A DNA stretch of 62,818 nt, filler included, from Polymyxa betae A26-41 (taxonomy: Eukaryota; Protista; Endomyxa: Phytomyxea): the NCBI GenBank assembly GCA_003693705.1. It is 7 parts of 7 records of this genome, joined end to end, with 100 filler letters (N's around TTAATTAATTAA, not from the genome) between each part and the next. Parts side by side here need not be neighbours in the genome. Positions count along the whole stretch, not along the records: positions 19,536 to 35,323 come from RBZT01000209.1; 6 more parts are not named here. The stretch is one strand, 5' to 3'. The translations under genes were made by a program, and so were the position numbers. Below the pieces are notes generated by a model. That model saw nothing but the letters and a program-made list of their open reading frames with translations, was not told the origin of the DNA and made no database searches. Below are positions 19,536 to 35,323 of the stretch, piece by piece. Every line of letters begins with the position of its first letter. Position 1 is the stretch's first letter.

Positions 19536-20033
19536 GCTATCCCGTCAAGGTCAAAATCGTCATCGTTGATGACTATTTGAACTTCATCCACGAGCTCTGC
19601 ATCAGCCCGCTCAACTGCGAGGTTCTTTCGCTTGGCATCCAGCAAGAGACGAAGCTGGCGCTGTCGCTTAGTTGGAGGTGCCATTCCTTCTAAGATCCGA
19701 TCAAATGTGAGAAATGTGTGATTCGACAGCATGCAAATCATCACCGTACGGAAGAGGGTTGCGCCCGAGGCCGCGCAGAGGCCCCGCAGTCGGCAGCGCT
19801 ATAGTATTTCGTGTTTTCCCATACATTTCTCATTTCTTCTATGTCCCATACAAAAAAATTCGAATCACAGCTCTTGGATTTACTTTTTCGAAATTTTTTT
19901 TCGTAACTTTCTTCTAAACGATGAGATCTGTCGAATTACGAGATAATAATTTTGGTTGGAACCCTTTGGGAGGCCTCAATAGACCCCGACAATTCCCCAT
20001 ACAAATGTTGTCGGTTTAAGACTGCCCGCACTG
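19536..20033 (-). mobile_element. End of a Tc1/mariner-type DNA transposon
   Basis: Minus strand reads TA|CAGTGCGGGCAGTCTTAAACC. A closely similar terminus occurs at 60011. An ORF start (MAPPTKRQRQLR) runs into the gap. Confidence 0.55.
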
Positions 20034-20816
20034 TACGACATAAAATAACATGAAAAACACTAAGCAAGACCCTTAAACAACCCTATAAAAAGGAGTGGTC
20101 AAGGCGTATCAAGACTGCAATATGCAATAAACTTAATGACATTGTGATGTTCTGTATTGAGCTATGGATCGATTTTTTTGCAGCCATATTGCTGATCACA
20201 ATCCCATGGACTGGAAAGGTTTCAGATGTTAATCTGAAAAGAACGAGAATCACCTTACTAGGGCGAATAGTGACAGAAAAACCCGTTGATATCTTCATAC
20301 AATGCTCAGCTTAAAAAACACATTTAGAAATGGGAAGGGATTTGAAAACGTGAACAGAGGAGTTCATGGACCAATGTGGTCCAGGTGCTCATCCCTATAT
20401 TCCTTTAACCATAACACTTGTTACAGCTTTGCGATGACGGATGATAAAAAAAACAATGTTCTGACAGAGAATCGAACCCGCGTCCTTACGATGACTTTGC
20501 CCATCAGCTCTGATTTCTGACCAATATGTTTTTCGGATATTCCAGCTTGGTTTCCATTCTCTATGGCCAATCGCTCAGCGATCCCGAATCAGCACGAAAT
20601 CAACCTCGATTTTCATGTAACATTACTTTATCTGGCAGCAAGATTCCGATCCGAACCACTTCCCGGTCTGCGCTATTCGCGCTATGAGAAAAAGTGCCGC
20701 TCATATTATGACGCCAAATTCGCAAAGTCCCGTCAGCACTGTAACATAGCGATAATTTTTTTGTTTTTTTTTGTTTTTTGGGTTGTAGCAGTAACAGGTG
20801 ATGACACATTGGAATT

Positions 20817-22148
20817 TTATGAGTTGTTCGAGGCTGGGAAGAATGATGCGCAGATCGCGCGAATGATTTGTGGAAGCAGCCAGAATCGACGGCGCCGGAC
20901 GACCTCCGGAATGAACCGGATCTGCTCGTTCCTGAGCCACGCAGAAATGTGATCGAACGCTCGGCGACCATCCGCATCGCGCCGCTCGACATCGATCTTC
21001 GGGCTCCGTAATAACTCCCAGATGATAGGAACGCGACGGTATTTGACGGCCGCATGCAGCAAGGTCGTACCCATCCCCGGACATTGCACATTAATAAAAT
21101 CATTGATGATTGGATGCTGAATTAAAAATCGCAGCAGATCTAGATCGCTCTGAAACAGATCGTCAATGAGGCACGAAACGATAATCTCCGCCTCGGTCCG
21201 GAAACGAGAGAGAAATTGCGGCATCCGCAGCAGGGCCGCGGCCAGATCCATTTGGCCCGTACGGACCCCGGAATCCAGCACATAATAGCAGTCCGCAAAC
21301 CCGGGCAACAGCAGGGGATAGATCCGCGCCAAATCCTCCACCTGAACTTGCACCCGCCTGAAGAACTGCGCGGCGTCGAATCGCAGCCCGTAACGCAGCA
21401 GAGCCAGTACGACGCCGGGGTCGGCGAGGAGTCCGGCGACGGGCGTCCGCAGCAATAATTTGGCGGCGACGACGTGATTCCAGGGAAAGATGCGATCAAA
21501 GGGGGGCGGGAATCGCCGGCGGACTTGGCGGATGCCGCGGGCGGACAGCGACGAGGACCGCGGCTGGACCAGATCGAGCTGCTCCGTGATGAGCAGGACG
21601 GCATCGTGAATCTCCGCGGGAATCGCCGCCGCCTCGCCCAGTTCCAAGTCCGGCAACTGCGTGATCAAATGCGACGAATAGGTGCGCTGCTCGAAGGGAA
21701 ACGGGGCCGGTACGACGGCGGTGGCCGTGACGACCGCCGAGAACGCCGCGCCGTTCACGCATTGAATCAGGCGCCGAATCAGCCGGACTTTCCGTCGTGT
21801 GCGCAGGTGGCCGCGGAGCAGCCGATCGTACAGGCCCATGGCCTGCTGCGGAGTGATTCGCGATGAGAGGACGCGTAACTGCGGGACGGAGGGGACGAGG
21901 TCCGCGACCTCGTAGATCATGTCCGGGAGCCGCGCCGGCGTCCGGGACTCGAACAGGGCGTAGAATTGGACCAGAGGCCGCAGCGTTCCGCGCAGCCCGC
22001 GGCAGGTCGCGGCCAGGTGGGCCACGGACCGCGCGTCGTCCAGGCGGACGCCGACGCTCAGCACGAGCTCGTCGGGGAGGTCGCAAAGCCCGGTCGCGGT
22101 CGCGCCGCACGCGGCCAGGGCCAGTACGACCAGAGCCGCCACTCTCAT
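20817..22148 (-). CDS. Secreted F-box / ankyrin-repeat protein (candidate effector), 443 aa
   Basis: Signal peptide MRVAALVVLALAACGATA, F-box LCDLPDELVLSVGVRLDDARSVAHLAATCRGLR, ankyrin GTTLLHAAVKYRRVPIIWELLRSPKIDVERRDADGRRAFD. Intact, intronless and GC-rich. Confidence 0.85.
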   Translation of the reverse strand: MRVAALVVLALAACGATATGLCDLPDELVLSVGVRLDDARSVAHLAATCRGLRGTLRPLVQFYALFESRTPARLPDMIYEVADLVPSVPQLRVLSSRITPQQAMGLYDRLLRGHLRTRRKVRLIRRLIQCVNGAAFSAVVTATAVVPAPFPFEQRTYSSHLITQLPDLELGEAAAIPAEIHDAVLLITEQLDLVQPRSSSLSARGIRQVRRRFPPPFDRIFPWNHVVAAKLLLRTPVAGLLADPGVVLALLRYGLRFDAAQFFRRVQVQVEDLARIYPLLLPGFADCYYVLDSGVRTGQMDLAAALLRMPQFLSRFRTEAEIIVSCLIDDLFQSDLDLLRFLIQHPIINDFINVQCPGMGTTLLHAAVKYRRVPIIWELLRSPKIDVERRDADGRRAFDHISAWLRNEQIRFIPEVVRRRRFWLLPQIIRAICASFFPASNNS

Positions 22149-23422
22149 CGCCGTGAAAAGAATGGCGACAGGGACCGTGCAAGGACGACGGCGTCAAATG
22201 AGATTGTCCTCACGGACTTTCAGGTGTTTTCGGACGTTTTCGCCTATCTCAGTCGTATGAGAATTTCGAATTTTTTTATCGACTTTTGTCAGCTTGATTA
22301 TGTTGATCAAAACCCTAATTTGTTTATATTCGCTTTCTCATGAGAGACGAGAAATTCCCTTTACTGATGAGAGATAATAATATCCAATATCGCTTTAAAT
22401 CTCAGCCGTGAGCCATCAGCTATTTTTCGGATAACAAAAGTCATTGTCATGATAAATCGACTCTGGCGCTAAGATGGTCTTGATTCGATAACTCCATTTG
22501 CATCAAATAGGCTTCATTTCATGCGTAATTTCCTTTAGCGTTTTGCTCAATCCAAACATCTCGTTCTGATCGTGAATGAAGTTCAGATTGCATCGCATTT
22601 TTCTGTTCCCGTGATTCGAACAGTTGTATAATATGAGACCATCAGATTGGCTGGACGATAGTCTAAAGGGTGCGGAATCGCTCTGTTCCAGATAGTACGA
22701 CACGAAATGCGTAATAAAGTGATCAGTGAAAATTGCCATCTCTCTCTGTGTTTTGTAGCGCAGCAAATGAAAATAATTGAAGAGTTCTGCGTGAGGCCTA
22801 TTACCATATAACTGATGTAATATGAGACAATCAGATAATGTAGGATTTGATTTTATTCGACTAGTTCGCTGATTTTTGGTCAACAGGCGGCGTTATTTCC
22901 AAAACGCATGGCTGGAAAGTTTAGGCAATCTGCCCATTAGATAATGTAGGACGATTTCCCAACCGGTTCGAATTCGCTCGTACGAGGCTCGTCATCGCAG
23001 TTAAAGTTATAACGCTGTCATCATTGGGTTGTTTACGACATCAGATACCGAAGGAGCGACCAATTTTACCAGCTCGTCTTTTGTTATTTCGAAACAGATT
23101 CATGAAACGTATAGTGAGTGATCGCCTCGAGTCGCACCTCCGGAATATGCAGTTTCATATATACGAACGAGATAAGCCTTCTTGGTACCTAGGGTTTCAG
23201 TGTCGTCATAAAAAATCAAACTATTCGCCGCAGACGGACTCCGGTCCTCGGTTGTATCTGGAGCATATTGCACATGTATTAATGTTTGTAATTAAACTGA
23301 CATATTTGGGAAAATATCGTTGATTTTGGTCAAAAGGAGTGAGTTTGTTCAAAAGTCTGAGGCTTGGGTTCAGGGACAACGGATTCAGGCTCGTCAATGA
23401 TCTCTTCACTAAAAGGGGAATT

Positions 23423-23858
23423 TCATGTGTGATGAATTCTATGAAAGTCCTTCCAGAACTGACGTTTTAAACAGTTTTTTTCTAACTGTCTCTGTTGTTC
23501 CCAGTACTCCTGAATAGAGACCGGTAACCTTAATCCGGACTTTCCTTTCTTCTCAGCGTCTGACATCGACTTGCGGATCAAGATTTCTTCAAGCTGCTTC
23601 TGTAGTTCGGCCAACTTTACAATGAGCTCCTCTTCAGATAGTGCTTTAGAATCAGTCATTATTCGAAGTGAGAGTATGGAGCGTTGTGTCTTGAGTTGAG
23701 GTAGGTTCAGAGACAGGACTGGATTCTGTTCCAATACAATACATTAGTGGTTGTGATGTAACAAATCATGAGTGCAATGTAATACCAAGTTTAGTGACTG
23801 TGACAGCCTGGGAGAGGGCCAACATCATGCCAAAGAGAAGAACAAAGAGGAGCTTCAT
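23423..23858 (-). pseudogene. Small secreted protein gene with a short product or decayed 3' part
   Basis: MKLLFVLLFGMMLALSQA signal peptide. A 60-nt intron (23726-23785) gives ...KL-ESSPVSEPTSTQDTT...*. A coiled-coil-like continuation lies in another frame. Confidence 0.55.
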
Positions 23859-25960
23859 GGTTGAAGGGGATCGAGGGAGAGAGAAGCGAGAAATTCGATT
23901 TCAATAAAGATGAAGAGAATTGGGAATGAGAAGAGAGAGTTGGGGACCCCAAAGATCAAGGCGGGTCTCGCTCTTGCAATGGAAAGTTTCTACGCAGAGA
24001 GATTAATCGGATTAATCCGCAGAGTGGCAAATTGGGACTGAAGGGCTGCGCTGTGTCTCATCTCCGACTGCGAATCGGGAACATCCGCGTGTCAATGTGA
24101 GTGTGCAGTCTGGACTATATGATGATGTGCGCTATATTATCTCCGTTGGACAATTATACGACGCAGTGCCCTAATGGTTGCTTTCTCCAGGAGACCTTCG
24201 TCGGAAGGCAGTTCTTCACGAACTGGCCAATGCACGCGGCTATCATATTATCATCGGCATTGACCATTTGGCTGTCCTTTTATCCCAAAAGTCCATTTCC
24301 ATATCCCCTCTTCTTCCTGTCCGAATGTATCGTCTTGATCTGTTTCTGATAAAGCCTCGCTTACAACCAGAAGCTAAAGCGATTTGATCCCATCGTAGGA
24401 AAGACACAGCATGCGTTTTGCATCTCGAAAACTCCAAGTTCTGAAGCTTGGTCCGAGATCCACTAAGAGGTTCAAGATTGATAGGTTTATCACCAAAATA
24501 GCATAAATTGCGACTCCAATTCCAGAGCAAGATGCGAATGTGTGAAGGCAAATCTCAGAACTTTATCAAATTATCGTGACAAAGGGGTCGCGCAGCCAAC
24601 CAGAGGCCACGCAATAGGCTGCGCCACTCACTTTATCTGCTGCTTTTTTCTAACTACTTCTTACATACTGTAATCGATGACAGGCGCGCGACGTCGGGCA
24701 GCGGCCGCCCTCGGGACGAACAGCGACGTTTTATGCTGGAAGGCGATGGCGGCCTGTAAAGCGAGTAGGTGTCTGCAAATCTGCAGCAAGGCAGGGGGGC
24801 GACATCTGATTCCTCCATCATGATGATGAATTCGTAAAATATTTCACTGCAAGTACTAAGGACGTTGTAAACTAGTGTAGTCGTCCTGGCCCACTTCTGC
24901 CTCTGTCGATAGCTGCTTCGGGCCGAGGATTGTCATTTAACCTCTCCATCCCCAAATAGACCGATATTGCCATCGATGGCAGCCTTAACAGATGCCGCAT
25001 AGGCTGTGCGAAGGAGACAGGCGTCCTCTATACAGCCATTTCATATTTTACCATAGAAATCGAACTCATCGATTCGATAGTCCAAGATGTTGCCGAGATG
25101 CGTGCTGAGCTCCAGCGTCGCAATTCTGCAGAAAGGCATTTTATCGCGAACCACACGAAGAAACTCCCGGAAAGCGGCTACCTTGATGACCCTAGTGGTG
25201 TTGAAATCGATCATGACCCATTGATTTCGTCGTCCAAGATAAAGTTGAAGGAAATTTACAGGAAAATATCTTCGGACAAACTTAAATTGCAATGTTAAAG
25301 AGAGCAAATTTGATAATAGCCCCAGACCGAATCAACCCGCTGTATTCGATATAGAAACATCTAGATACGAATAAGCAGCAGCCATCCCTTTTTGACCGTG
25401 TACGACCAGAACATTCGTTAGCCCGAAATCATCTTAAGAACAATGCGATGGAATTGAAAGGGATTCATGTAGAGTTCACGAAACTCAGTTTGAAGAAGCG
25501 ATTTTTGGCCGAAGTACGAACACGGATGATATATTCGACGAGATAGCCTTTCATTACCGACAACCCTAAGAAAACTCTCTATCCGCAGGGATTCATGACT
25601 TCAGGCGACTCATCCCTAATAATCTTTGCGGTTAAACACAGCTTAAAATTATATATTTGCCTGTTTACGTTGGCACAGCTCATGAAGTCTGACAATCGTC
25701 TCCAAGCTCTGCTTATCATTGCTGTCAAATGCGTGATTTTTCAAGTTTTGAGTCTTGAAGTTAAGCCTTACCAGCCGCCATCGCCTTCTAGCATAAAATG
25801 TCGCTGTTCGTCCCCAGACCAGTTCTCTGGTCACGTTTAACCTTCTCCTATTTCTATCCTCTTTCGTTTCTACAATAAAAGCGAAGTTGAAAATCTCAAC
25901 ACCTGGCTTTCAATGATGATAATCGCACATTTCTGGGATGATGTTTTGCGACAGTTTGTT

Positions 25961-27625
25961 TGTTGGGATTCGGGTTTATATTGTATAATTGAGTATATTA
26001 ATCCAGAAATTCCAACTCCAAAGTGACGCAGCCTTTCTACTCATACAGTCACAGGACGATACCTTGTGAACGTTCCCTATATTTATAAATCACCCTTTTC
26101 CTTTCCACCATATTCGACCTTTATTAGTAGATTAAGAGTCCCATATGTCACACAATGGCAATGAATCACAACCTGATGAATCATCGGAGAAAACGCCAGA
26201 AAGTATGCTAGACGACGAACTTGATCAAGCGATAAAACAAGCAGAACGAGAGCAAAAGATCAAAAAATTGAATGAGCTGAGAAAATTAAACAAAGATCAA
26301 AACCAAGTTGAAGTTCAAAAGACAGACGCAATAGAAATGCCATTAACGAACAAGATTGAATTCAAACCGTTTAAAGGAGCTGGCGACAACTTCGAATTCT
26401 GGTTAAGCACAGCGGTCATGTACCTAAAGGCAACAAAATTCGACCAAGTTGTCGGAGTAAATGATGATGGATCACCAAATCTGGAACCACCACGTATCGA
26501 TTCGCCAGCAAGGAAACAAATGGATTGGCAAGCACGACTTCTCATTGTTGGCACATTGATTACACGAGAAGTCGCGATGACCCTAAATCTGCAGATGTGT
26601 GAAACCTCCTATCACGCCTGGAAGATTCTGTTTAAAACATATAATCCCAGATGCAGAGCTGTTACCGTGTCAATTCTTGAAGAGTTCTTCTCAATGCGAC
26701 AAGGAGAGAGTGAGAGCATCGATATGTTCAGCGCACGTCTGAAATCATTTGCAAACCGTTTAAGAGCACCTGTGGATAGCAAAATTTTACAATTTAATGA
26801 CGAACTGACCGCTATGATAATGATGATGAAAGGTAATCGCAAGTATGCTCCCACGATTAGTGCGATAAACGCTCGATCCGATGGAGAAGATGAATCATTA
26901 GATCTCGGTCGACTGACGGCAATTCTTGTACAGGAAGAGAAGATGAAGCTGAAGCAAGAAAAAGATGATATAATCCTATCTGCAAATTATTGCATCAACA
27001 CAGCGATATGCCGACAGCATCCTCACGGGAAACACCAAGAAGGAGAATGCAAAAGAAAATGTCGAATTCATCCATTCGGATCCAACTCAAACGAATAATG
27101 CCGAAACCAAACAAAACTTTTTAAACCATTTAACAAAACAAACCAAGAAAGTGCAAATCACAATAATACAAGCGTCAAAAGCAGTGATTCTTATCTGACG
27201 GATCTGAACCAGTTAGCACTGTCTGCTAGTGTAACCGATGATACAAACGGCAACTGGATTATAGACAGTGGTTGCTCCATGCACATGGATAATAATCAGA
27301 TGTCCTACGTCAACTATAGATCTGACGGAAACTTAAAGATCATCATGGGGAATGATACATCCGAATACAGTTCAGGAATTGGCGATAAAGACATTACGAC
27401 GTCAACTGGCAGATTCAGAATCGAAAATGTCCTGCTAGTTCCAAACCTGAAGCGCAAGTTAATCTCAGTTGGCCAACTAACTAAAGAGGGTTAAAAATTC
27501 GTGTTCGATGGGAGCCAATTAGATATCTATGAAAGAGATGAATGGACACCACCCAAAGGAAAACGAGTCGTGACATGCCAGCGAAACGCTAATAATCTCT
27601 ACACCCTGAGCGAATCCAAAAATGA
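25961..27625 (+). mobile_element. Truncated Ty1/copia element (LTR, PBS 26130-26144, gag, protease)
   Basis: Gag 26145-27098 with a UBN2-like region (AWKILFKTY...FFSMRQGESESIDMF), CHHC knuckles, protease WIIDSGCSMHM, ENVLLVPNLKRKLISVGQL and NNLYTL. In-frame stops. The LTR start is inferred. Confidence 0.88.
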
Positions 27626-27799
27626 TACTCGAACGTCAGCATCACTATTGTTTGATCGGCGCAGATCATCACATAAATCGAGGATCTTCTCCGGAGCACC
27701 TAGAAAGGGATATCCACACTAGGGTTTAGGGATTCAGCAAAAACAGCGACACCTTTGACGACAGCCACGTATCGAGCCTCGGTTATGGATGCGAAGATG

Positions 27800-28171
27800 G
27801 GATTTTCCGGGTTGTTGTTAACAACAAAATAGCGAGATTATCAGCTTGACGTGTAGCCTGCCATTCCGGCAAGGATCCCATTCCGATCAGGAACAGGACG
27901 CAGAGCAGCATGACGATGGCCTCGGTGATCTTCTTGGTAGAAAACTTGGCCGTGATACCGGCCACCATCAGCCAGACGATGGCGTTATTAATGGCCTCCC
28001 AGAGAATCTCATAGAACGGAGTCGACTTGGGCTTATCCAGGACATTGGCACCAATACACTCAATCCGACGCTGCGCTTCATCCGAGCTCAGGCCCGTTTG
28101 GGAATCCGTCTGTAGATCAGACATCAACGTCTCGATCGTCATACTGGCCCATTTCTCCTACAGAGACATCA
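27800..28171 (-). pseudogene. N-terminal fragment of a P-type II cation ATPase
   Basis: Cation_ATPase_N motif GLSSDEAQRR...GANVL plus TM1-TM2 and EWQA. Early in-frame TAG and no downstream domains. Confidence 0.8.
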
Positions 28172-28541
28172 TTGTCAGTATAAAACTCTTAATGTAAAAT
28201 TTTAATTTCATAATAAAAAGCAAAATTAAAAAGGTAATTTAAAATGTTAAATAATAAAAAAAAGCTAGATAAAAAAGTTAATTGAAAAAAGCGAACACAG
28301 CGTGAAACAGTGATGGAAATCAAAGAATGGGAATGAGCAGAACGGACCTCATTGGCACGGTCGGTAATGAGCGGACCATTGCCATCAGATTCGCGGAAGC
28401 ACGGTAAACATTGTAGTTTGCTCTGAACATGGTGCTTGATGTTACGAAACAAGGCGCCCAGACGACCTTCGTCGGCATCAGGAACATCATGTTGCAGATT
28501 CGGACACGCCTTTTGCAGCATCTCAAGCAGGGCCGCCTACC

Positions 28542-28880
28542 CTAACCGACCTCGACGGTTTCTTCGATGATGGGAGATCCGGAAGGTTTCAAAGACGAAG
28601 AACCCCTGCTGAAGATCCTGGCGACTTTGTCGGAGAGAGAAGGCTGGGAGGAAGAAGCCGGAGAACGGAGCGTAACAAGTTGCTTATCGTCTTCGAGTGT
28701 GTAGACGGAAGAAAGCGTGATAGAGCGCGTCATATCAAGACCGACACGGCCTTTGAGAGGAAAACTTTGGGACTTGGTCATAGATGGGCCGGACCCAGGT
28801 TGGGAGCGGGATGATTCCTGGGCAGCAGTGGCCACATAAGCCAAGGCCAGGAACGCGATCGCAGAGAACGTCGCCTTCAT
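28542..28880 (-). CDS. Ser-rich secreted protein (candidate effector), possibly extending to ~28300
   Basis: Signal peptide MKATFSAIAFLALAYVATA, with coding-like sequence continuing past the TAG. Confidence 0.65.
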   Translation of the reverse strand: MKATFSAIAFLALAYVATAAQESSRSQPGSGPSMTKSQSFPLKGRVGLDMTRSITLSSVYTLEDDKQLVTLRSPASSSQPSLSDKVARIFSRGSSSLKPSGSPIIEETVEVG

Positions 28881-30040
28881 TGGAACGAGAACAAACAGGC
28901 AGTTTGCAGAATGAACTTAAACCGAGCTCGCCCAGATTTTCCTCCCGACATATCCACCATTAGGGAACTTCGTCGTATAATAGTCCAACGGAGTTATTAT
29001 AGCGCACATCATATAATCCAGACAGCGCACTCACATTCACACTGCGGATGTTCCCGATTCGCAGTCGAAGTTGGGACACAGCGCAGCGATTCATGTCGCA
29101 GATCGGGAATTGATATGTTAGGCAGTCGGCGTTTGGAGGCTAAATAAAGCTTTGAGTTCAGGATGAGATATTCCGCCAAATATGGTCATACCAGCCCCTC
29201 TTGTCAGGTTCTGCGATACGGAGACAGAGCTACGAAGAGACAGCGGTCCAGGTCCGCAGAAATCCGCACGGATCTCCGGAGCATTTCGAATAAAAGTGAG
29301 GATGCGGAAACGGATTCCCCCAACGCGACTGGAACAGCCGTAGGTCTTTCGAGCAGCAATGGATGAGGCAGCGTAGTACTGGTCCGCAGACCGTGACCAG
29401 CCAGTTTCTCATACATTGTTTCTCTTTGTTTGTCCCTTGAAGGGGAGGCCGGAATGAGACGAGTTTTTGATACAAACTGGCTATTAAAATGAGCTTTTGT
29501 AGCGTGGTTTTAGAAATCGCGACTTTCGTGATTTCGTGCAGGACGATGATGGTGCCATTCCGGTTGATAGATATTGGCTGTCTGCGCCTTTTCGGGTGAT
29601 CTGATATACGAATGGATGATGGCAGAGAAAGAGCGCGTAGCTCTTCGGCATTCGGCTCTTTGTTCGGAGGAAAGATTTATTACATGATGATAGAGAGGAG
29701 TTTTGTTATACCAGATAATGACACACACTATGATAGTCGGAAATCTCCGCCACGTTATGATTCAAGAAATCGTTCGAATCGTTCGACAGTCCGGGTCCTA
29801 TCGGGCGGCCTCGTTTTCTCTTTGTTGCTTTGTTAGAAGGTTCCTGAATAGAGATTATCAGTGAGGAATCCGTAATGATTAGAGATCGATGACATTATCA
29901 TTAAGCGAACAATACTCCGGACATGGTAACGAATTCGACGATCCCGGAATTGATTCTGTCAAATGTTGTGCTGCGGACTGGTTTGATGGATTTTCTGGGC
30001 AGAATTTCTATATAGAGATGTCAGTATGGAGATGGGAAGC

Positions 30041-30358
30041 CTACTCATCATACAGGAGATGAAATCTCCGGGAGCTCCTATATAGAGAATTTAGAATGAG
30101 ATATCGAAAGGATAGAGCCCATCGTACATTTAAATCGAAAGAATGTTGTGAAGTTGTTTTTTCAATTCGAATCAGCTCCAAATCGCGGACTTGATTTTGA
30201 GGTGAAATAGGCGGATTATGACTGACGGAACTGATGGACGGCAATACCTCGGCTCGGTGATCGATAGGACTATGGACGGATTGTCCCAGAATGGCCTTAG
30301 CTGGGTTGGTGGCGTCGCATACGACCAGTATGACAAGGATGATGGAGATAGAAAACAT
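30041..30358 (-). CDS. Putative secreted protein, first exon(s)
   Basis: MFSISIILVILVVCDA signal-like N-terminus. 3' structure is unresolved. Confidence 0.45.
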   Translation of the reverse strand: MFSISIILVILVVCDATNPAKAILGQSVHSPIDHRAEVLPSISSVSHNPPISPQNQVRDLELIRIEKTTSQHSFDLNVRWALSFRYLILNSLYRSSRRFHLLYDE

Positions 30359-32240
30359 TTTGGGGAAGAGACACGAATGCCGACAGAGTCGGGTCCGCAG
30401 GCCGCGCTGTCCGAAATTGGGCTCCTGTTTAATGGCTCCCTCCCTGTTACAGGATCCGATGTGCGGCCTGATATACACGCGACTTTAAAAAAAAGTTTTG
30501 CAATTTTATTGGTCTGTTTCTATCGAATCTGCAATTTCAGTGGTCTTTTTTTACAGAAAAACTTCTGCAATTTTCATTGGTCTGTTGCAGAACAATAGAG
30601 ATTCCAGATCGAATCCTTTAATGATCCAATGATCGGCTGTGTAAAGTAACGTTACAGTCTACATCAAGTTCATGATACAATTCTAGCGCACAGACGAAGC
30701 CTGTTTCGATGAATCAGCATTGTGAGTAAATGGTGTTTGATAGAGACATTTTATCTACCTCAACTTTAACGAGATTTTAATAAATTGTGAAGGACAATTT
30801 CGGACAAGGTCAATAGGTGGTGATACTCGACATTGGACGGCTTGATGGTCGAGAGAGAATCCGATGGAAATTTCAGCAAAAACTTGCAAAACAATCCAAA
30901 GTCTCAATTTCCTTGTGCTTGCAAAACAGCCAGTTAATTGCAGGAGCCAAAAGGATTGTTTCACAGCCTCATCAAATATTTTGCGCAGTTTTGATATTTT
31001 TATGATTTGTTTTTCACACAGCAAATTATTCATCCAGCTTGAAACGAAGCGGTTTTACAGAGACTACCCAGATAGTAGTGAACATCTGTAGCTGTGACAG
31101 AATTGCGTAATAATTAGTAGTTAAAAACAGCTCTTTATGCGTTGCTGAGCTGAATAAGAACAGAACATTCATGCACAAGAATCCATCTGAAGAAATTTCT
31201 CATTGAAGAGAATATTTGCAGGCACTGCAATCAGTATTCAGAAACTGTGAATGGGAAAGCTCCCGCTTTTTTATATAAAAATTGATGAAGGACCTTTCAA
31301 ATATATCTATGAATATATGACTGTATTACAGCGACTTATACTCAGGGTCCTAGGGTTAGGGTTTTCCGAGATTGAATATGAATGGCAAAACGGGTGTATT
31401 CTTGTTGATTCTGGAGATAGTCAGAGCGCCATTATGCTGGAGGTGAGAGCACATCCAAACCCTAATCTTCAACATACTACTCGATTTCATTCGAACAAAT
31501 TGCCATCATAAACCATCCTGGGACAAATTCGAGAAAATGTTCCGCCAACTGTATGCGAACCACAGGGTTATTTTATAGCGCGAATGGGTTTTGTTAACGA
31601 AAAGTTTTCAGGGTGCTGAATTGCAATCCATTAAGGCGATCTCTGCAGATATTAATTCGATTAGGTTGGCTCAGGATTGGATCAGATAGGCTGGAACTGT
31701 TTGTCCGCACATTAGATGGGCGCCCCAGTAGCCCAAGGGCGGACCCATCTGAGCCTAGTTCCAGAATACGAAACTATATCATTTGACAGTAAAGGGAAAC
31801 TACTTCTGTCTGTCGACAGATGAGCGGGCTGCGGCATCATCTGTCTCTCTCTCCCTCTCTCTGGTATATATCTGGCTCTGTCTGGTAGACGTTCGCACAC
31901 TATGCCTCTTAGACTTCAATATGACTTTATTTGAAAGAATGGGCTAATGTACAATGACTGCTGATTCGCGGTCGATTCTTTTGAGCGTTGACAAATATCT
32001 GTCGTCTGGTTCCTTATTGGGAACGGCACCAGAACGAACAAGCAGTAGTCTTTGACAGGCTAAAGAGTAGAGAGATGATTACAGAGATGCCATCCATTGT
32101 TTTTGTAGAAGCGAAACCTGTCCGTCCATGTCAGCTAACAATTTTGAAACGCAGCAAGCAATACATGGAAATGATCGATCTGACTTGAAATTGCCACAGA
32201 ACAAACGTGACGACATTGGATGTAAGTGCTTCGGAAAGAA

Positions 32241-32912
32241 TCACAATTGCATGAAGCTCGGAACCGCACCAGTGGTCGATGTAACCTTCCAGGTAGTGAC
32301 GGTCTCATCGCTCACACCACAGACCGTGATAACGTTTGTTGATAAGACAGTCGATACTCCTTCCCAATTATTCTTGACAAAATCGCTATATGCGCGAAGT
32401 CCCTTGATTTTCGAGTTTGACCCATCTGCCCGGAAACTGCCCACCGTTTTCGCAGTGAAATGTTTGGAAGTATGAGACCCGCACACATTCTCCCTATCAG
32501 AATTCAGCTTCTGAATGAAGCTCACAGCACTTGAACTACTGGCGTATTTGTTTTGGCACGACTGTAGTTGTCGTTGCAGTGGTTTATTGATTGGATTTTC
32601 ATAAACAGCAGAATTCATTTTATTTATGAACGGATCACTGGGCAGTCCAGACCCTATACAAAATTGAATTATTATGGAATAACGCGACGGCAAGCAACTG
32701 AGCGTAATTTTGGATGCACCAGTATAGAACTGATGACGTAAAATGGTTTGTGTGTTAGCAAGATGATTCGCCGCCATTGCGAACCGACAGACAGCAGGCT
32801 CCGCCATCTGTCGACAGACAGAAGTAGTTTCCCCACTGCGACCAACGTCCTCTTCGTATCTATATTTAGACACGCCAACATTCCGTAAAGGCGGCTCGAC
32901 CTCACCCCCCAA
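32241..32912 (-). CDS. Hypothetical protein or pseudogene
   Basis: 223-codon ORF with no recognisable motif and an uncertain start. Confidence 0.25.
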   Translation of the reverse strand: MGGEVEPPLRNVGVSKYRYEEDVGRSGETTSVCRQMAEPAVCRFAMAANHLANTQTILRHQFYTGASKITLSCLPSRYSIIIQFCIGSGLPSDPFINKMNSAVYENPINKPLQRQLQSCQNKYASSSSAVSFIQKLNSDRENVCGSHTSKHFTAKTVGSFRADGSNSKIKGLRAYSDFVKNNWEGVSTVLSTNVITVCGVSDETVTTWKVTSTTGAVPSFMQL

Positions 32913-32962
32913 AGCCGAACGTCATTCTTCAAACGACCGTTTGACAATGTCGCCTATATTGA

Positions 32963-33625
32963 TTGTTGAGCTTTCTGCTATCCACGATGGTGCTGTTGAT
33001 GACGCCGGGGACCAGTACGGACACCCATACGTACTTGTACGCATGGAATGAGAGTGGGACTACCGTAAAGTTTCAGTTCAGCAACAATCTCTCTCAGATT
33101 AGTTGCCGATGGCACCAAGCGAGTTCTCATGCTCAGTACCATCCGCAGAACTGGAACGATTATCGTCTGTACAAGGATATGACGGACGATGTGATTCTTG
33201 GTGAAGATGGGACTAAGGACCAGTATGACGATACTCATGAAGTTGTGACTGAGTTCGGACCGCTGTTTGCGGATCTATTCAATGCTGGACAATTACCTGC
33301 TATGGATACTGTACAGATTGAACTCCGTAAGACCGACGATGAGCTGAAGTTTTGGATTATTGGAGCTAAACATCGTGATGATTGTAATTATATTGTCGCA
33401 TATCAATGTGAGGAAATTGAGACCGTCTTCTTCGAAGACGAGGAATTCGCCATGGCATATTATGAGACTTATCTTCCACAGTTTATACATAAGATCTTTA
33501 TTAGCAAGCGAGACGAGTCAGCTTCAGGCATTGGAGATGCGAAATTTATTGATCAAGTTGGACAGGTAGCTGAACGTCTATTTGACCTAACCATAACCCT
33601 AAAACCCGGTACACTGCTACAGTAA
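32963..33625 (+). CDS. Acidic hypothetical protein with a hydrophobic N-terminus (possibly secreted)
   Basis: 220-codon intronless ORF with globular-looking composition. The start is ambiguous (upstream ATG 32947 is out of frame, in-frame ATG at 32987). Confidence 0.6.
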   Translation: MLSFLLSTMVLLMTPGTSTDTHTYLYAWNESGTTVKFQFSNNLSQISCRWHQASSHAQYHPQNWNDYRLYKDMTDDVILGEDGTKDQYDDTHEVVTEFGPLFADLFNAGQLPAMDTVQIELRKTDDELKFWIIGAKHRDDCNYIVAYQCEEIETVFFEDEEFAMAYYETYLPQFIHKIFISKRDESASGIGDAKFIDQVGQVAERLFDLTITLKPGTLLQ

Positions 33626-34533
33626 ACATTTTCTCATTTCTCCTTCCTTCAATTTTATAAATCCCCTATCTACCCTCTTAGGAATGTTCAATCGCCAAAA
33701 GTTTATAGTTTCATAACCTGATCTTTGGTTGATTCATAAAGGTCACACGGCAAATCATTTAGTACTGTTGATACTGTATCTTCAGAAAATCTGGAATCCG
33801 CAACTGCCAATTTGAAGTAGTTATTTGAAGTTGTTTCTCTTTCTGCGGCTGTACATTCATCAAATAACATATTACTCTTGGAAATTACATGATATTGTAG
33901 TAGAGAGGAGGTTTATGTAATGGGAGAGTCACAAGAGAGCCGCTGAAAATGCCCAAAAACCGGAACACGAAATCTGGTTTATTGTCCATAATTACGAAAT
34001 AGATTTCTAACATGAGTAACATGTGCAGCATATAGCTGTATGAACGATGGAATCCCACTTAATCACGATCAGATGTTCCCTTGTATAAGTCATCAGGTAG
34101 ATTTGGGAGATAATCACCCAGATTTGAATACTCATAGGTTCGCTTTCAGTTCCTTGACGATACTGTGACCGGCTCTGTGATAGATGGCGGCCGAGGCGCC
34201 TAGAGAGAGGACAAGGCCAGGATTTGAACCAGATGCGATCCCCGCCACCGATAATCGAGTAATATCACCGAACTGAAATTAGCCATATGAAATATTCAAT
34301 CAGAAAAAAACGTTTCTCTTTAAATACAACCAAGTTGGCGAGGCTCGAATTTTTGTGATGCGGGATTTCTGACATCCGAAGATTGCTTCTGAGAAAAAGC
34401 CTCACACTCAAATTGAAGTAAATCTATAATGCTCATAAGAAGTAGGGAAATGAAGTGAAAACTTCCTAGAGTCAACCAATTTAGAGCGAATCTTTAAGCG
34501 GCCATTAGCTGGAATAGCCTCTGTGTAATGTTA

Positions 34534-35323
34534 CAGTAAATGTAAAAATTCAGATTCACTGTTACTGCTATTCTTAGTTGAAGTGGGACAACGCGATAGA
34601 AAAATTTCGCATTGCGCGGAAGTTCGGAGGCCCCGCCGATATTAATCGCAACATGAGAGAGAGGCAAGGATATGGGTTATTGGCAACACTGGATGGTCAG
34701 CAAGCATCTGTCAATACAAAGCAGCATGCTGCTTATGCATATTTTTTCTTGGGATTCACGATAGCCCGTATTGCCACGATTTATCGAAAGGGAACATCAA
34801 GTATATCGCGCTGGATAGAGAGATATAAGACTGATGGTGATCTTTCTCGAAGAGTGTCGAGCGGCTCGAACATTAAGTTCTCCCGCGAGCAACGCCAGTG
34901 GATCTTTCGGTATATTATGGACCATCCTTTGTCGTTTCTTGATGAAACAAGGCGCGCTTTCATGCTTTATTGGAATCTCAGCATCAGCACCTCAAGCTTC
35001 TGGCGTCTAATGCGAGAATCGAATCTCTCGTACAAGGTTTGGCCAGGGTATGCTTGGGCCAAACCACTGAAAAGTCATTCCAGGTCATCGAGCGTCGCGC
35101 TATGCAGATATCTGTAACAGACGTGATAAGATTCTTTCGTGAGCTCACTTCACTACACTGGACACACGAAACCTTGTCTTTTCTCGATGAAATCTCCTTT
35201 GACAATCGAGGAATGCTTCGACGACGTGGATATGCTGTAAAGGTATGTGATTTCGAGTTCGTGGGAGCTTCTCGCTGGTATCACTGCTAACAGGGTCAAA
35301 AGCTTCTTTATCATGGAGAGTTT
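34534..35323 (+). mobile_element. IS630/Tc1-type transposon with intron-containing transposase (5' part)
   Basis: TA|CAGT terminus at 34534 and ATG at 34653. HTH (IARIATIYRKGTSSISRWIERY) and FLDEISFD catalytic motif. Introns 35037-35083 and 35243-35293 restore the frame (SYK|VIERRA, AVK|GQKL). Confidence 0.85.

Follow-up and report, generated by a model that had tools for sequence, protein, structure and literature searches.

We analysed a window of 62,818 nucleotides (the whole stretch of DNA under study, in which seven parts of the Polymyxa betae A26-41 assembly GCA_003693705.1 are joined end to end with filler) and describe here a gene in the part that comes from RBZT01000209.1 (positions 19,536 to 35,323). 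The gene encodes a protein in which a signal-peptide-like N-terminus is followed by an F-box-like motif, a helical linker and an ankyrin-type repeat solenoid (Table 1). A preliminary description of this DNA had reported an intact, intronless and GC-rich open reading frame (ORF). Its coordinates were right, the strand is corrected here to minus, and the frame is indeed open from the ATG to the TAA without interruption. Upstream, an in-frame TGA lies 14 codons before the start, with no ATG between the two. We regard the ORF as a genuine gene with a single exon, carried by a plasmodiophorid, one of a group of parasites that live obligately inside root cells.

Table 1. Features of the gene, of the encoded protein and of the neighbouring DNA, in window positions
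Feature	Positions	Strand	Residues	Basis and remarks
ORF	20817–22148	minus		443 codons; ATG 22146–22148, TAA 20817–20819; no internal stop; GC-rich island in repeat-rich, AT-rich DNA
Signal-peptide-like N-terminus	22089–22148	minus	1–20	hydropathy maximum of the protein; −3/−1 scan
F-box-like motif	21969–22088	minus	21–60	PF12937; LPDEL (24–28), hydrophobic spacing, T-C-R-G-L-R (48–53)
Family-specific helical linker	21639–21926	minus	~75–170	alignments; helices with pLDDT 56–68; no Pfam family
Ankyrin-type repeat solenoid	20919–21626	minus	~175–410	model; roughly 5–6 helix pairs
Best-conserved family motif	21477–21518	minus	211–224	alignment; R-R-F-P-P-P-F-D-R-I-F-P-W-N at the solenoid start
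Last ankyrin repeat	20976–21071	minus	360–391	Pfam, Ank_2
C-terminal tail	20820–20918	minus	411–443	RRRR (418–421), amphipathic hydrophobic helix
Short dispersed repeats	~19912–20035, 22843–22936, 23284–23417, 23573–23727			flank the gene
Box and T-run	~20440–20510	minus		~300 nt downstream of the stop
Ty1/copia-type remnant	26145–27494	plus		gag ORF, then Pol fragment
179-amino-acid ORF	34578–35117	plus		near the edge of the part

The composition of the gene sets it apart from its surroundings, as the preliminary description had noted: its GC content is 63.1%, compared with 39.1% and 42.3% in the two 500-base flanks. The whole part around the gene has a GC content of 45.1%, and published values are 45.1% for P. 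betae and 45.7% for Spongospora subterranea (PMC6328671). The GC-rich block starts only about 50 nucleotides (nt) before the ATG. GC at the first, second and third codon positions (GC1, GC2 and GC3) is 0.68, 0.45 and 0.77, a pattern typical of coding sequence, and GC3 declines markedly from 5′ to 3′: it is 0.92 over the first 50 codons of the ORF and around 0.6 over the last 140. A paralogous gene on the contig AYZY01070006.1 shows no clear 5′-to-3′ gradient in GC3.

In a second study of this organism, a single contig of 2,918 bases spans positions 20008–22925, which include the gene together with its AT-rich flanks on either side, and differs at three positions; the change from GC-rich to AT-rich DNA is therefore not an assembly artefact or a chimera. 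The sole difference within the ORF, at 21587 (T>G on the plus strand), turns codon 188, ACG (Thr), into CCG (Pro) and falls in a modelled helix in the first repeat of the solenoid; the remaining two, at 20059 and 22780, are both in the flanks. Contig depth over the gene is single-copy, unlike that of the flanking repeats, and no paralogue of the ORF was found elsewhere in the part. Identical pieces occur at low depth in sequencing runs labelled as other organisms, DNA runs from 2013 included, as is expected for a root endoparasite that is carried in host samples. A joint that skips 21418–21826 was rejected as an intron owing to its non-intron ends, its 25-base side and its presence in a DNA run too. 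The contigs of the four runs compared with the window gave patchy coverage that did not distinguish genic from intergenic stretches, and these runs therefore look like DNA.

The first 20 residues of the protein comprise M-R, an 11-residue core of Ala, Leu and Val, and C-G-A-T-A-T-G, a c-region of small residues; scanning revealed several sites compatible with the −3/−1 pattern (A/G/T) between residues 15 and 20. Hydropathy peaks at this core, and no other window of the protein is strongly hydrophobic. By inspection and simple rules only, the n-, h- and c-regions of a classical signal peptide can be recognized, with no further membrane span, so that the cleavable-looking signal peptide of the preliminary description is borne out in its shape. 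Under the positive-inside rule, R2 before the core and D/E behind it favour an N-in/C-out orientation, in which the C-terminal part would be translocated. The next Met after the start is residue 77 and, as there is none before it, any product that carries the F-box-like motif also carries the hydrophobic N-terminus. In a paralogue (P0126), the ORF opens at the first ATG that follows an upstream stop, with an N-terminus of different sequence that has a classic h-region and an A-Q-A site; a signal-like N-terminus is thus kept there without sequence identity. On the basis of these features, we consider the protein likely to be secreted.

Directly behind this segment, residues 21–53 match the Pfam family PF12937, with an E value of 1.4 × 10−3 (18.8 bits) when the whole protein is searched and of 1.7 × 10−4 (21.7 bits) when the first 100 amino acids are searched. 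The motif has the L-P-x-E start, the spacing of helices 1 and 2 and the C/S-(K/R)-x-(W/L) helix 3 of an F-box, with conservation in relatives. P0126, which is 32% identical over the F-box region, matches PF00646 at the aligned place (E value of 0.049, 14 bits) and F-box_4 there too, and its aligned motif reads I-P-D-V-I ... A-T-S-K-S-M; the partial relative P0020 starts with V-C-R-R-F-R-V-L, a helix-3 signature. The top three language-model neighbours of residues 18–100 are clusters of F-box domain-containing proteins (0.87, 0.82 and 0.81), although all of these scores are below the 0.9 level and provide only a lead. Residues 43–62 (21963–22022, minus strand) resemble the bovine Rieske mitochondrial presequence in PDB chains (E values of 0.05–0.3), a chance likeness of an Ala/Arg/Leu-rich segment; we rejected a mitochondrial presequence because acidic residues and the hydrophobic signal-like core precede the segment.

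The family-specific linker contains a conserved YDRL (residues 107–110) and a basic stretch (116–126). In the best-conserved motif of the family, at the start of the solenoid, the residues P, P, F, F and P are invariant and the predicted local distance difference test score (pLDDT) is 73–90; another family motif in the alignments, L-L-R-Y-G-L-R-F, occupies residues 250–257. The solenoid itself is modelled as stacked helix pairs with a pLDDT of 75–91. The leading matches in VIA-align are all ankyrin (KANK3, Z of 10.3; a thermophilic ankyrin protein, 9.6; ASB7, 9.5; and DARPins), and of the 50 best rows, nearly all correspond to ankyrin or DARPin domains and align with residues 256–413. Foldseek assigns a probability of 0.97–0.99 to ankyrin domains, and the rows from the ESM Atlas are all ankyrin, over residues 173–441. 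Pfam detects only the last repeat (Ank_2, E value of 9 × 10−4, 20.2 bits compared with a cut-off of 27.3), and at the aligned repeats two paralogues score above the Pfam cut-off (P0001, 38.9 bits; P0025, 29.2 bits for Ank_4 and 28.3 bits for Ank_2). According to the model, residues ~175–410 form one degenerate ankyrin solenoid. The preliminary description, which spoke of a helical region and a C-terminal ankyrin repeat, was right about the presence of ankyrin; the model extends it from a single repeat to a continuous solenoid. The basic RRRR patch that it noted is present in the tail, to which the tail of P0025 is weakly similar, and the protein ends in P-A-S-N-N-S without a CaaX box (no Cys at position −4).

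A word-indexed search of 5.8 billion proteins with the protein as query gave no match. With phmmer, run exhaustively against 1.84 billion representatives, we obtained 147 matches, most of which are generic ankyrin matches to residues ~290–420. Six relatives (P0001, P0020, P0031, P0035, P0065 and P0126) match beyond the ankyrin part, with E values from 2 × 10−21 to 5 × 10−4; P0001 spans query residues 214–393 (E value of 2 × 10−21), P0020 spans 81–281 and P0126 spans 23–157, and P0025 corresponds to the last repeats. Together, the homologues align over residues 23–393. No further family members were present among the fetched phmmer proteins, a family-profile search through the word index found only P0020, and two metagenome scans with family alignments yielded 67 pattern matches, none of which was confirmed.

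The relatives originate from tiny ‘Beta vulgaris’ contigs and from soil metagenome contigs. P0001, P0020 and P0126 are each annotated as ‘hypothetical protein, partial [Beta vulgaris]’ on contigs of 0.7–1.25 kb of a sugar-beet assembly, and on the P0126 contig GC-rich coding sequence (GC3 of 0.68) lies behind an AT-rich upstream region, as at the gene described here. These ‘Beta vulgaris’ family proteins are probably P. betae contamination of the sugar-beet assembly. The proteins concerned, which are annotated as Beta vulgaris hypothetical proteins on contigs of around 1 kb (contig AYZY01070006.1; GenBank proteins KMS64600, KMS85982 and KMS94377), are members of the family and have its composition. 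The relatives, the composition and the two runs that contain this DNA in full, which date from 2018 and 2021 like the two P. betae genome data sets, together point to a plasmodiophorid, most likely P. betae and less likely S. subterranea or a relative. Proteins of Plasmodiophora brassicae or S. subterranea are absent from the family matches, though both proteomes are public, and in the phmmer search the linker and motifs of the protein (YDRL, PPPF..FPxN and LLRYGxRF) had no P. brassicae match beyond generic ankyrin. The order of signal-like N-terminus, F-box-like motif and ankyrin given in the preliminary description is real and recurs in P0126, a paralogue of around 30% identity that shares this layout and has a signal-like N-terminus as well as a weak PF00646 match of its own at the homologous place. 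The family, as its sequences suggest, is lineage-restricted and divergent, with a predicted layout of a cleavable signal peptide, an F-box-like motif at the mature N-terminus, a helical linker and an ankyrin solenoid.

Among the candidate effectors of P. brassicae and of S. subterranea, no structural cluster is larger than that of the secreted ankyrin proteins (42 and 39, respectively); SKP1/BTB/POZ domains, which are related to ubiquitin ligases, are present in 17 proteins with ankyrin repeats, and PbANK1 is reported to bind MPK3 directly (PMC12503489). The supplement of that study reports InterProScan results on mature sequences from which the SignalP 6 peptides had been removed. Among its P. 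betae entries, poly_jg9577.t1 (407 amino acids) has PF00646 at residues 9–37 (4.7 × 10−6) and SSF81383 at 4–38 (1.4 × 10−6), poly_jg5851.t1 has SSF81383 at 2–42, and poly_jg2335.t1 (422 amino acids) has a C-terminal ankyrin domain at 329–418 (PMC12503489). The sequence clusters of these three proteins contain P. betae members only (10, 5 and 13 members); the clusters concerned are 15, 27 and 118, and members of two of the three share structural cluster 50 (PMC12503489). Our protein, the mature form of which would have around 423 amino acids, fits the architecture and the sizes of these clusters. The term ‘F-box’ is absent from the main texts of PMC12503489 and PMC4471660, the F-box entries of the secretome stand in the supplement of PMC12503489 without comment, and we found no discussion of plasmodiophorid F-box effectors in the literature consulted.

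Several observations weigh against reading the protein as a secreted F-box receptor. The F-box match scores below the Pfam gathering cut-off (18.8–21.7 bits compared with 24.3 bits for PF12937), though its E values are significant; the PF00646 match of P0126 is also below its cut-off of 20.5 bits; and our protein has Leu in place of the Trp that is conserved in helix 3 of the F-box. No solved F-box chain was matched by phmmer with the whole protein, its F-box core or the P0126 core at E values of up to 10, and a two-sequence profile searched against solved structures retrieved no F-box chain even at an E value of 10; apart from the likeness to the Rieske presequence, these searches of solved structures yielded ankyrin matches alone. 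Residues 1–91 have a pLDDT of less than 50 in the full AlphaFold model, and a separate model of residues 19–170 has a mean pLDDT of 55.9, for which the Foldseek output was noise with no match; given that only 6–8 alignment rows were available, these N-terminal models are uninformative rather than negative. The N-terminus is present in only two family members, so that the argument from conservation is based on two sequences plus one partial sequence. Furthermore, we infer the membership of the protein in the published P. betae clusters from identifiers, lengths and InterPro coordinates. The preliminary description had placed a ‘canonical F-box’ directly behind the signal: a motif is there, but with its score under the cut-off it cannot be called canonical. 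The HMMER comparison with PF00646/PF12937 and Ank that was suggested at the same time gives a significant E value for PF12937 and leaves both PF12937 and Ank_2 under their cut-offs. On balance, a true F-box fold seems fairly probable.

We propose that the protein would be exported co-translationally into the secretory pathway of the parasite, where removal of the signal peptide at around residues 18–20 would make the F-box-like motif the new N-terminus. The plasmodium of plasmodiophorids lies inside the host cell; release across the plasmodial membrane would therefore bring the protein into the host cytoplasm, with no need for a further translocation motif. There, the F-box-like motif could dock on plant SKP1 in a CUL1–RBX1 ligase and the ankyrin solenoid could present a host protein for ubiquitination, such that the protein would act as a substrate receptor supplied by the parasite to an SKP1–CUL1–F-box (SCF) ligase. 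The preliminary description regarded the organism as an intracellular protist parasite, and it is very probably an obligate intracellular protist of plant roots, which fits delivery into the host cytoplasm. The proposal builds on a gene, a family and an ankyrin fold that are in place, and on signal-like and F-box-like segments that are conserved in position. Given secretion and an F-box fold, binding to host SKP1 would have a better than even chance; the full chain, from export to the hijacking of the SCF ligase, is plausible, if slightly short of an even chance. On present sequence evidence, the protein is a credible candidate for an effector that redirects the protein-degradation machinery of the plant.

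Other explanations must be weighed against this proposal. The protein may be a secreted ankyrin effector that makes no use of an SCF ligase: the N-terminal motif would be a helical cap, a linker or another module, and host proteins would be bound, and inhibited or relocated, by the ankyrin domain itself, much as PbANK1 reportedly binds MPK3. This would account for an F-box match that is sub-threshold and structurally unconfirmed, and it would place the protein with the secreted, F-box-less ankyrin proteins that are the largest candidate group of P. brassicae and S. subterranea and of which one binds MPK3 (PMC12503489). It leaves unexplained why an LPxE-type motif with its spacing lies at the same place in relatives of around 30% identity, why independent InterPro calls (PF00646, 4.7 × 10−6; SSF81383, 1.4 × 10−6) find an F-box in proteins of comparable length from the P. 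betae secretome and why the language-model neighbours are F-box clusters; we regard it as somewhat unlikely. A further alternative is that the protein is an F-box subunit of the parasite’s own cytosolic SCF ligase, the N-terminus being either untranslated (owing to a wrong 5′ model) or an uncleaved membrane tether. Ordinary SCF adaptors of eukaryotes include proteins with an F-box and ankyrin repeats, the ESM Atlas rows contain an Ascomycota cluster of ‘F-box domain-containing protein’ with ankyrin repeats, and GC-rich 5′ coding sequence favours codons for Ala, Leu and Val, the residues of the hydrophobic core. However, the in-frame stop, the short distance between the start of the GC-rich block and the ATG, and the lack of a Met before residue 77 argue against a wrong 5′ model, whereas an 11-residue core is too short for a membrane span and the charges around it suggest that the C-terminal part is translocated. 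The signal-like N-terminus that P0126 retains without sequence identity also counts against a cytosolic protein, as does the lineage restriction and divergence of the family, which is a property of effector families and not of conserved housekeeping adaptors. We consider a role in the parasite’s own SCF ligase unlikely.

It is very improbable that the ORF is non-functional, that is, decaying, never functional or transposon-associated and open by chance in GC-rich DNA of a repeat-rich region. Dispersed repeats and a decayed copia element do lie nearby, and other frames of the GC-rich block contain ORFs of 130–233 amino acids, but the chance of an open frame of 443 codons at 63% GC is around 1 × 10−5, as estimated from base composition. 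The codon-position pattern, the homologues over residues 23–393 with their conserved motifs, the confidently folding ankyrin domain and a depth that is single-copy where the flanking repeats are not all point to a functional gene.

Pathogen-supplied F-box proteins provide precedents for the proposed receptor. Agrobacterium VirF and Ralstonia GALA proteins are delivered into plant cells and bind plant ASK/SKP1; unlike our protein, they are bacterial and use type IV or type III secretion, GALA proteins have leucine-rich repeats (LRRs) and neither has ankyrin repeats. AnkB of Legionella pneumophila, which mimics host SCF substrate receptors, has an N-terminal F-box followed by ankyrin repeats. 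This order is the same as in our protein, whereas AnkB is bacterial, is secreted by the Dot/Icm type IV system rather than through a Sec signal peptide, has 2–3 ankyrin repeats and carries a CaaX farnesylation box; it was not found among the sequence matches of our protein, and the resemblance is best viewed as a functional analogy only. Poxvirus ANK/PRANC proteins combine ankyrin repeats with an F-box-like motif that recruits SKP1/CUL1. The same combination, with recruitment of SKP1/CUL1, is reported for Ank proteins of Orientia tsutsugamushi (PMC4148323). The poxvirus and Orientia proteins differ from ours in having N-terminal ankyrin repeats and a C-terminal F-box-like PRANC domain, in being viral or bacterial and in having no signal peptide.

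Among eukaryotes, the SSGP-71 proteins of the Hessian fly (Mayetiola destructor), such as the candidate vH6, depend for their activity on an F-box, through which they bind Skp1-like proteins of wheat (PMC7330099). Similar to our protein, they come from a eukaryotic parasite of plants, are made with a signal peptide, have a repeat domain behind their F-box, and belong to a large, fast-diverging family; they differ in having LRRs instead of ankyrin repeats and in being delivered in insect saliva and not from an intracellular plasmodium, and the likeness noted is one of architecture. The secreted ankyrin proteins of plasmodiophorids come from the same parasite group and share the signal peptide and the ankyrin domain, but an F-box is unreported for them, including PbANK1 and the proteins that combine ankyrin with SKP1/BTB/POZ (PMC12503489). 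The novelty that the preliminary description claimed is thus narrower than stated. The Hessian fly effectors with a signal peptide and an F-box already bind plant Skp1 (PMC7330099), for P. betae the F-box entries are already in the supplement of PMC12503489, and in P. brassicae and S. subterranea the secreted ankyrin proteins are already the largest candidate group. The pathogen-supplied F-box receptor is known; the candidate described here would place it in a rhizarian parasite, in combination with a signal peptide and an ankyrin domain.

Clubroot and powdery scab are caused by plasmodiophorids, a group that also includes Polymyxa, the vector of rhizomania and of viruses of cereals. These parasites cannot be cultivated, and a mechanism is known for very few of their effectors. 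An F-box–ankyrin family that is secreted would offer a concrete and cheap hypothesis, namely binding to SKP1 that is lost in an LP mutant, and, if the F-box reading is true, the ankyrin domain could be used as bait for host proteins that are marked for degradation. The strategy of supplying a foreign SCF receptor, used by bacteria, viruses and a gall midge, would then extend to an intracellular protist. If the F-box-like motif does not bind SKP1, the gene would simply count among the secreted ankyrin proteins, a class already known. A wider speculation, which we think unlikely, is that around 30 secreted P. betae-specific ‘orphan helical proteins’ (the largest cluster of the secretome), the product of this gene included, are all F-box receptor mimics with diversified ankyrin surfaces. 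If so, an intracellular protist that causes no symptoms would carry a whole set of its own SCF receptors into the plant cell and reprogramme host protein turnover; Rhizaria would then have their first example of such a system, which could bear on the persistence of the virus vector in roots.

The gene is a single-copy island between short dispersed repeats, the summed contig depth of which is 20–35 times the single-copy level (12.9) in the organism’s own run; many diverged copies are present in other runs. Beyond the stop codon, a GGTTCGATTC box with a T-run after it resembles the 3′ half of a transfer RNA (tRNA) or of a tRNA-derived short interspersed element, an identity that was left unconfirmed by ARAGORN and by Rfam (E values of up to 1), neither of which gave a match. 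The Ty1/copia-type remnant consists of an intact gag ORF of 317 amino acids (PF14223, E value of 5.7 × 10−8) and then a Pol beta-barrel fragment (PF22936, E value of 5.5 × 10−12); as no protease, integrase or reverse transcriptase ORF was detected downstream, the element looks decayed. The 179-amino-acid ORF near the edge of the part has homeodomain-like/winged-helix matches (HTH_32, HTH_23 and HTH_29), all below the cut-off, which are typical of the N-terminus of a Tc1/mariner-type transposase.

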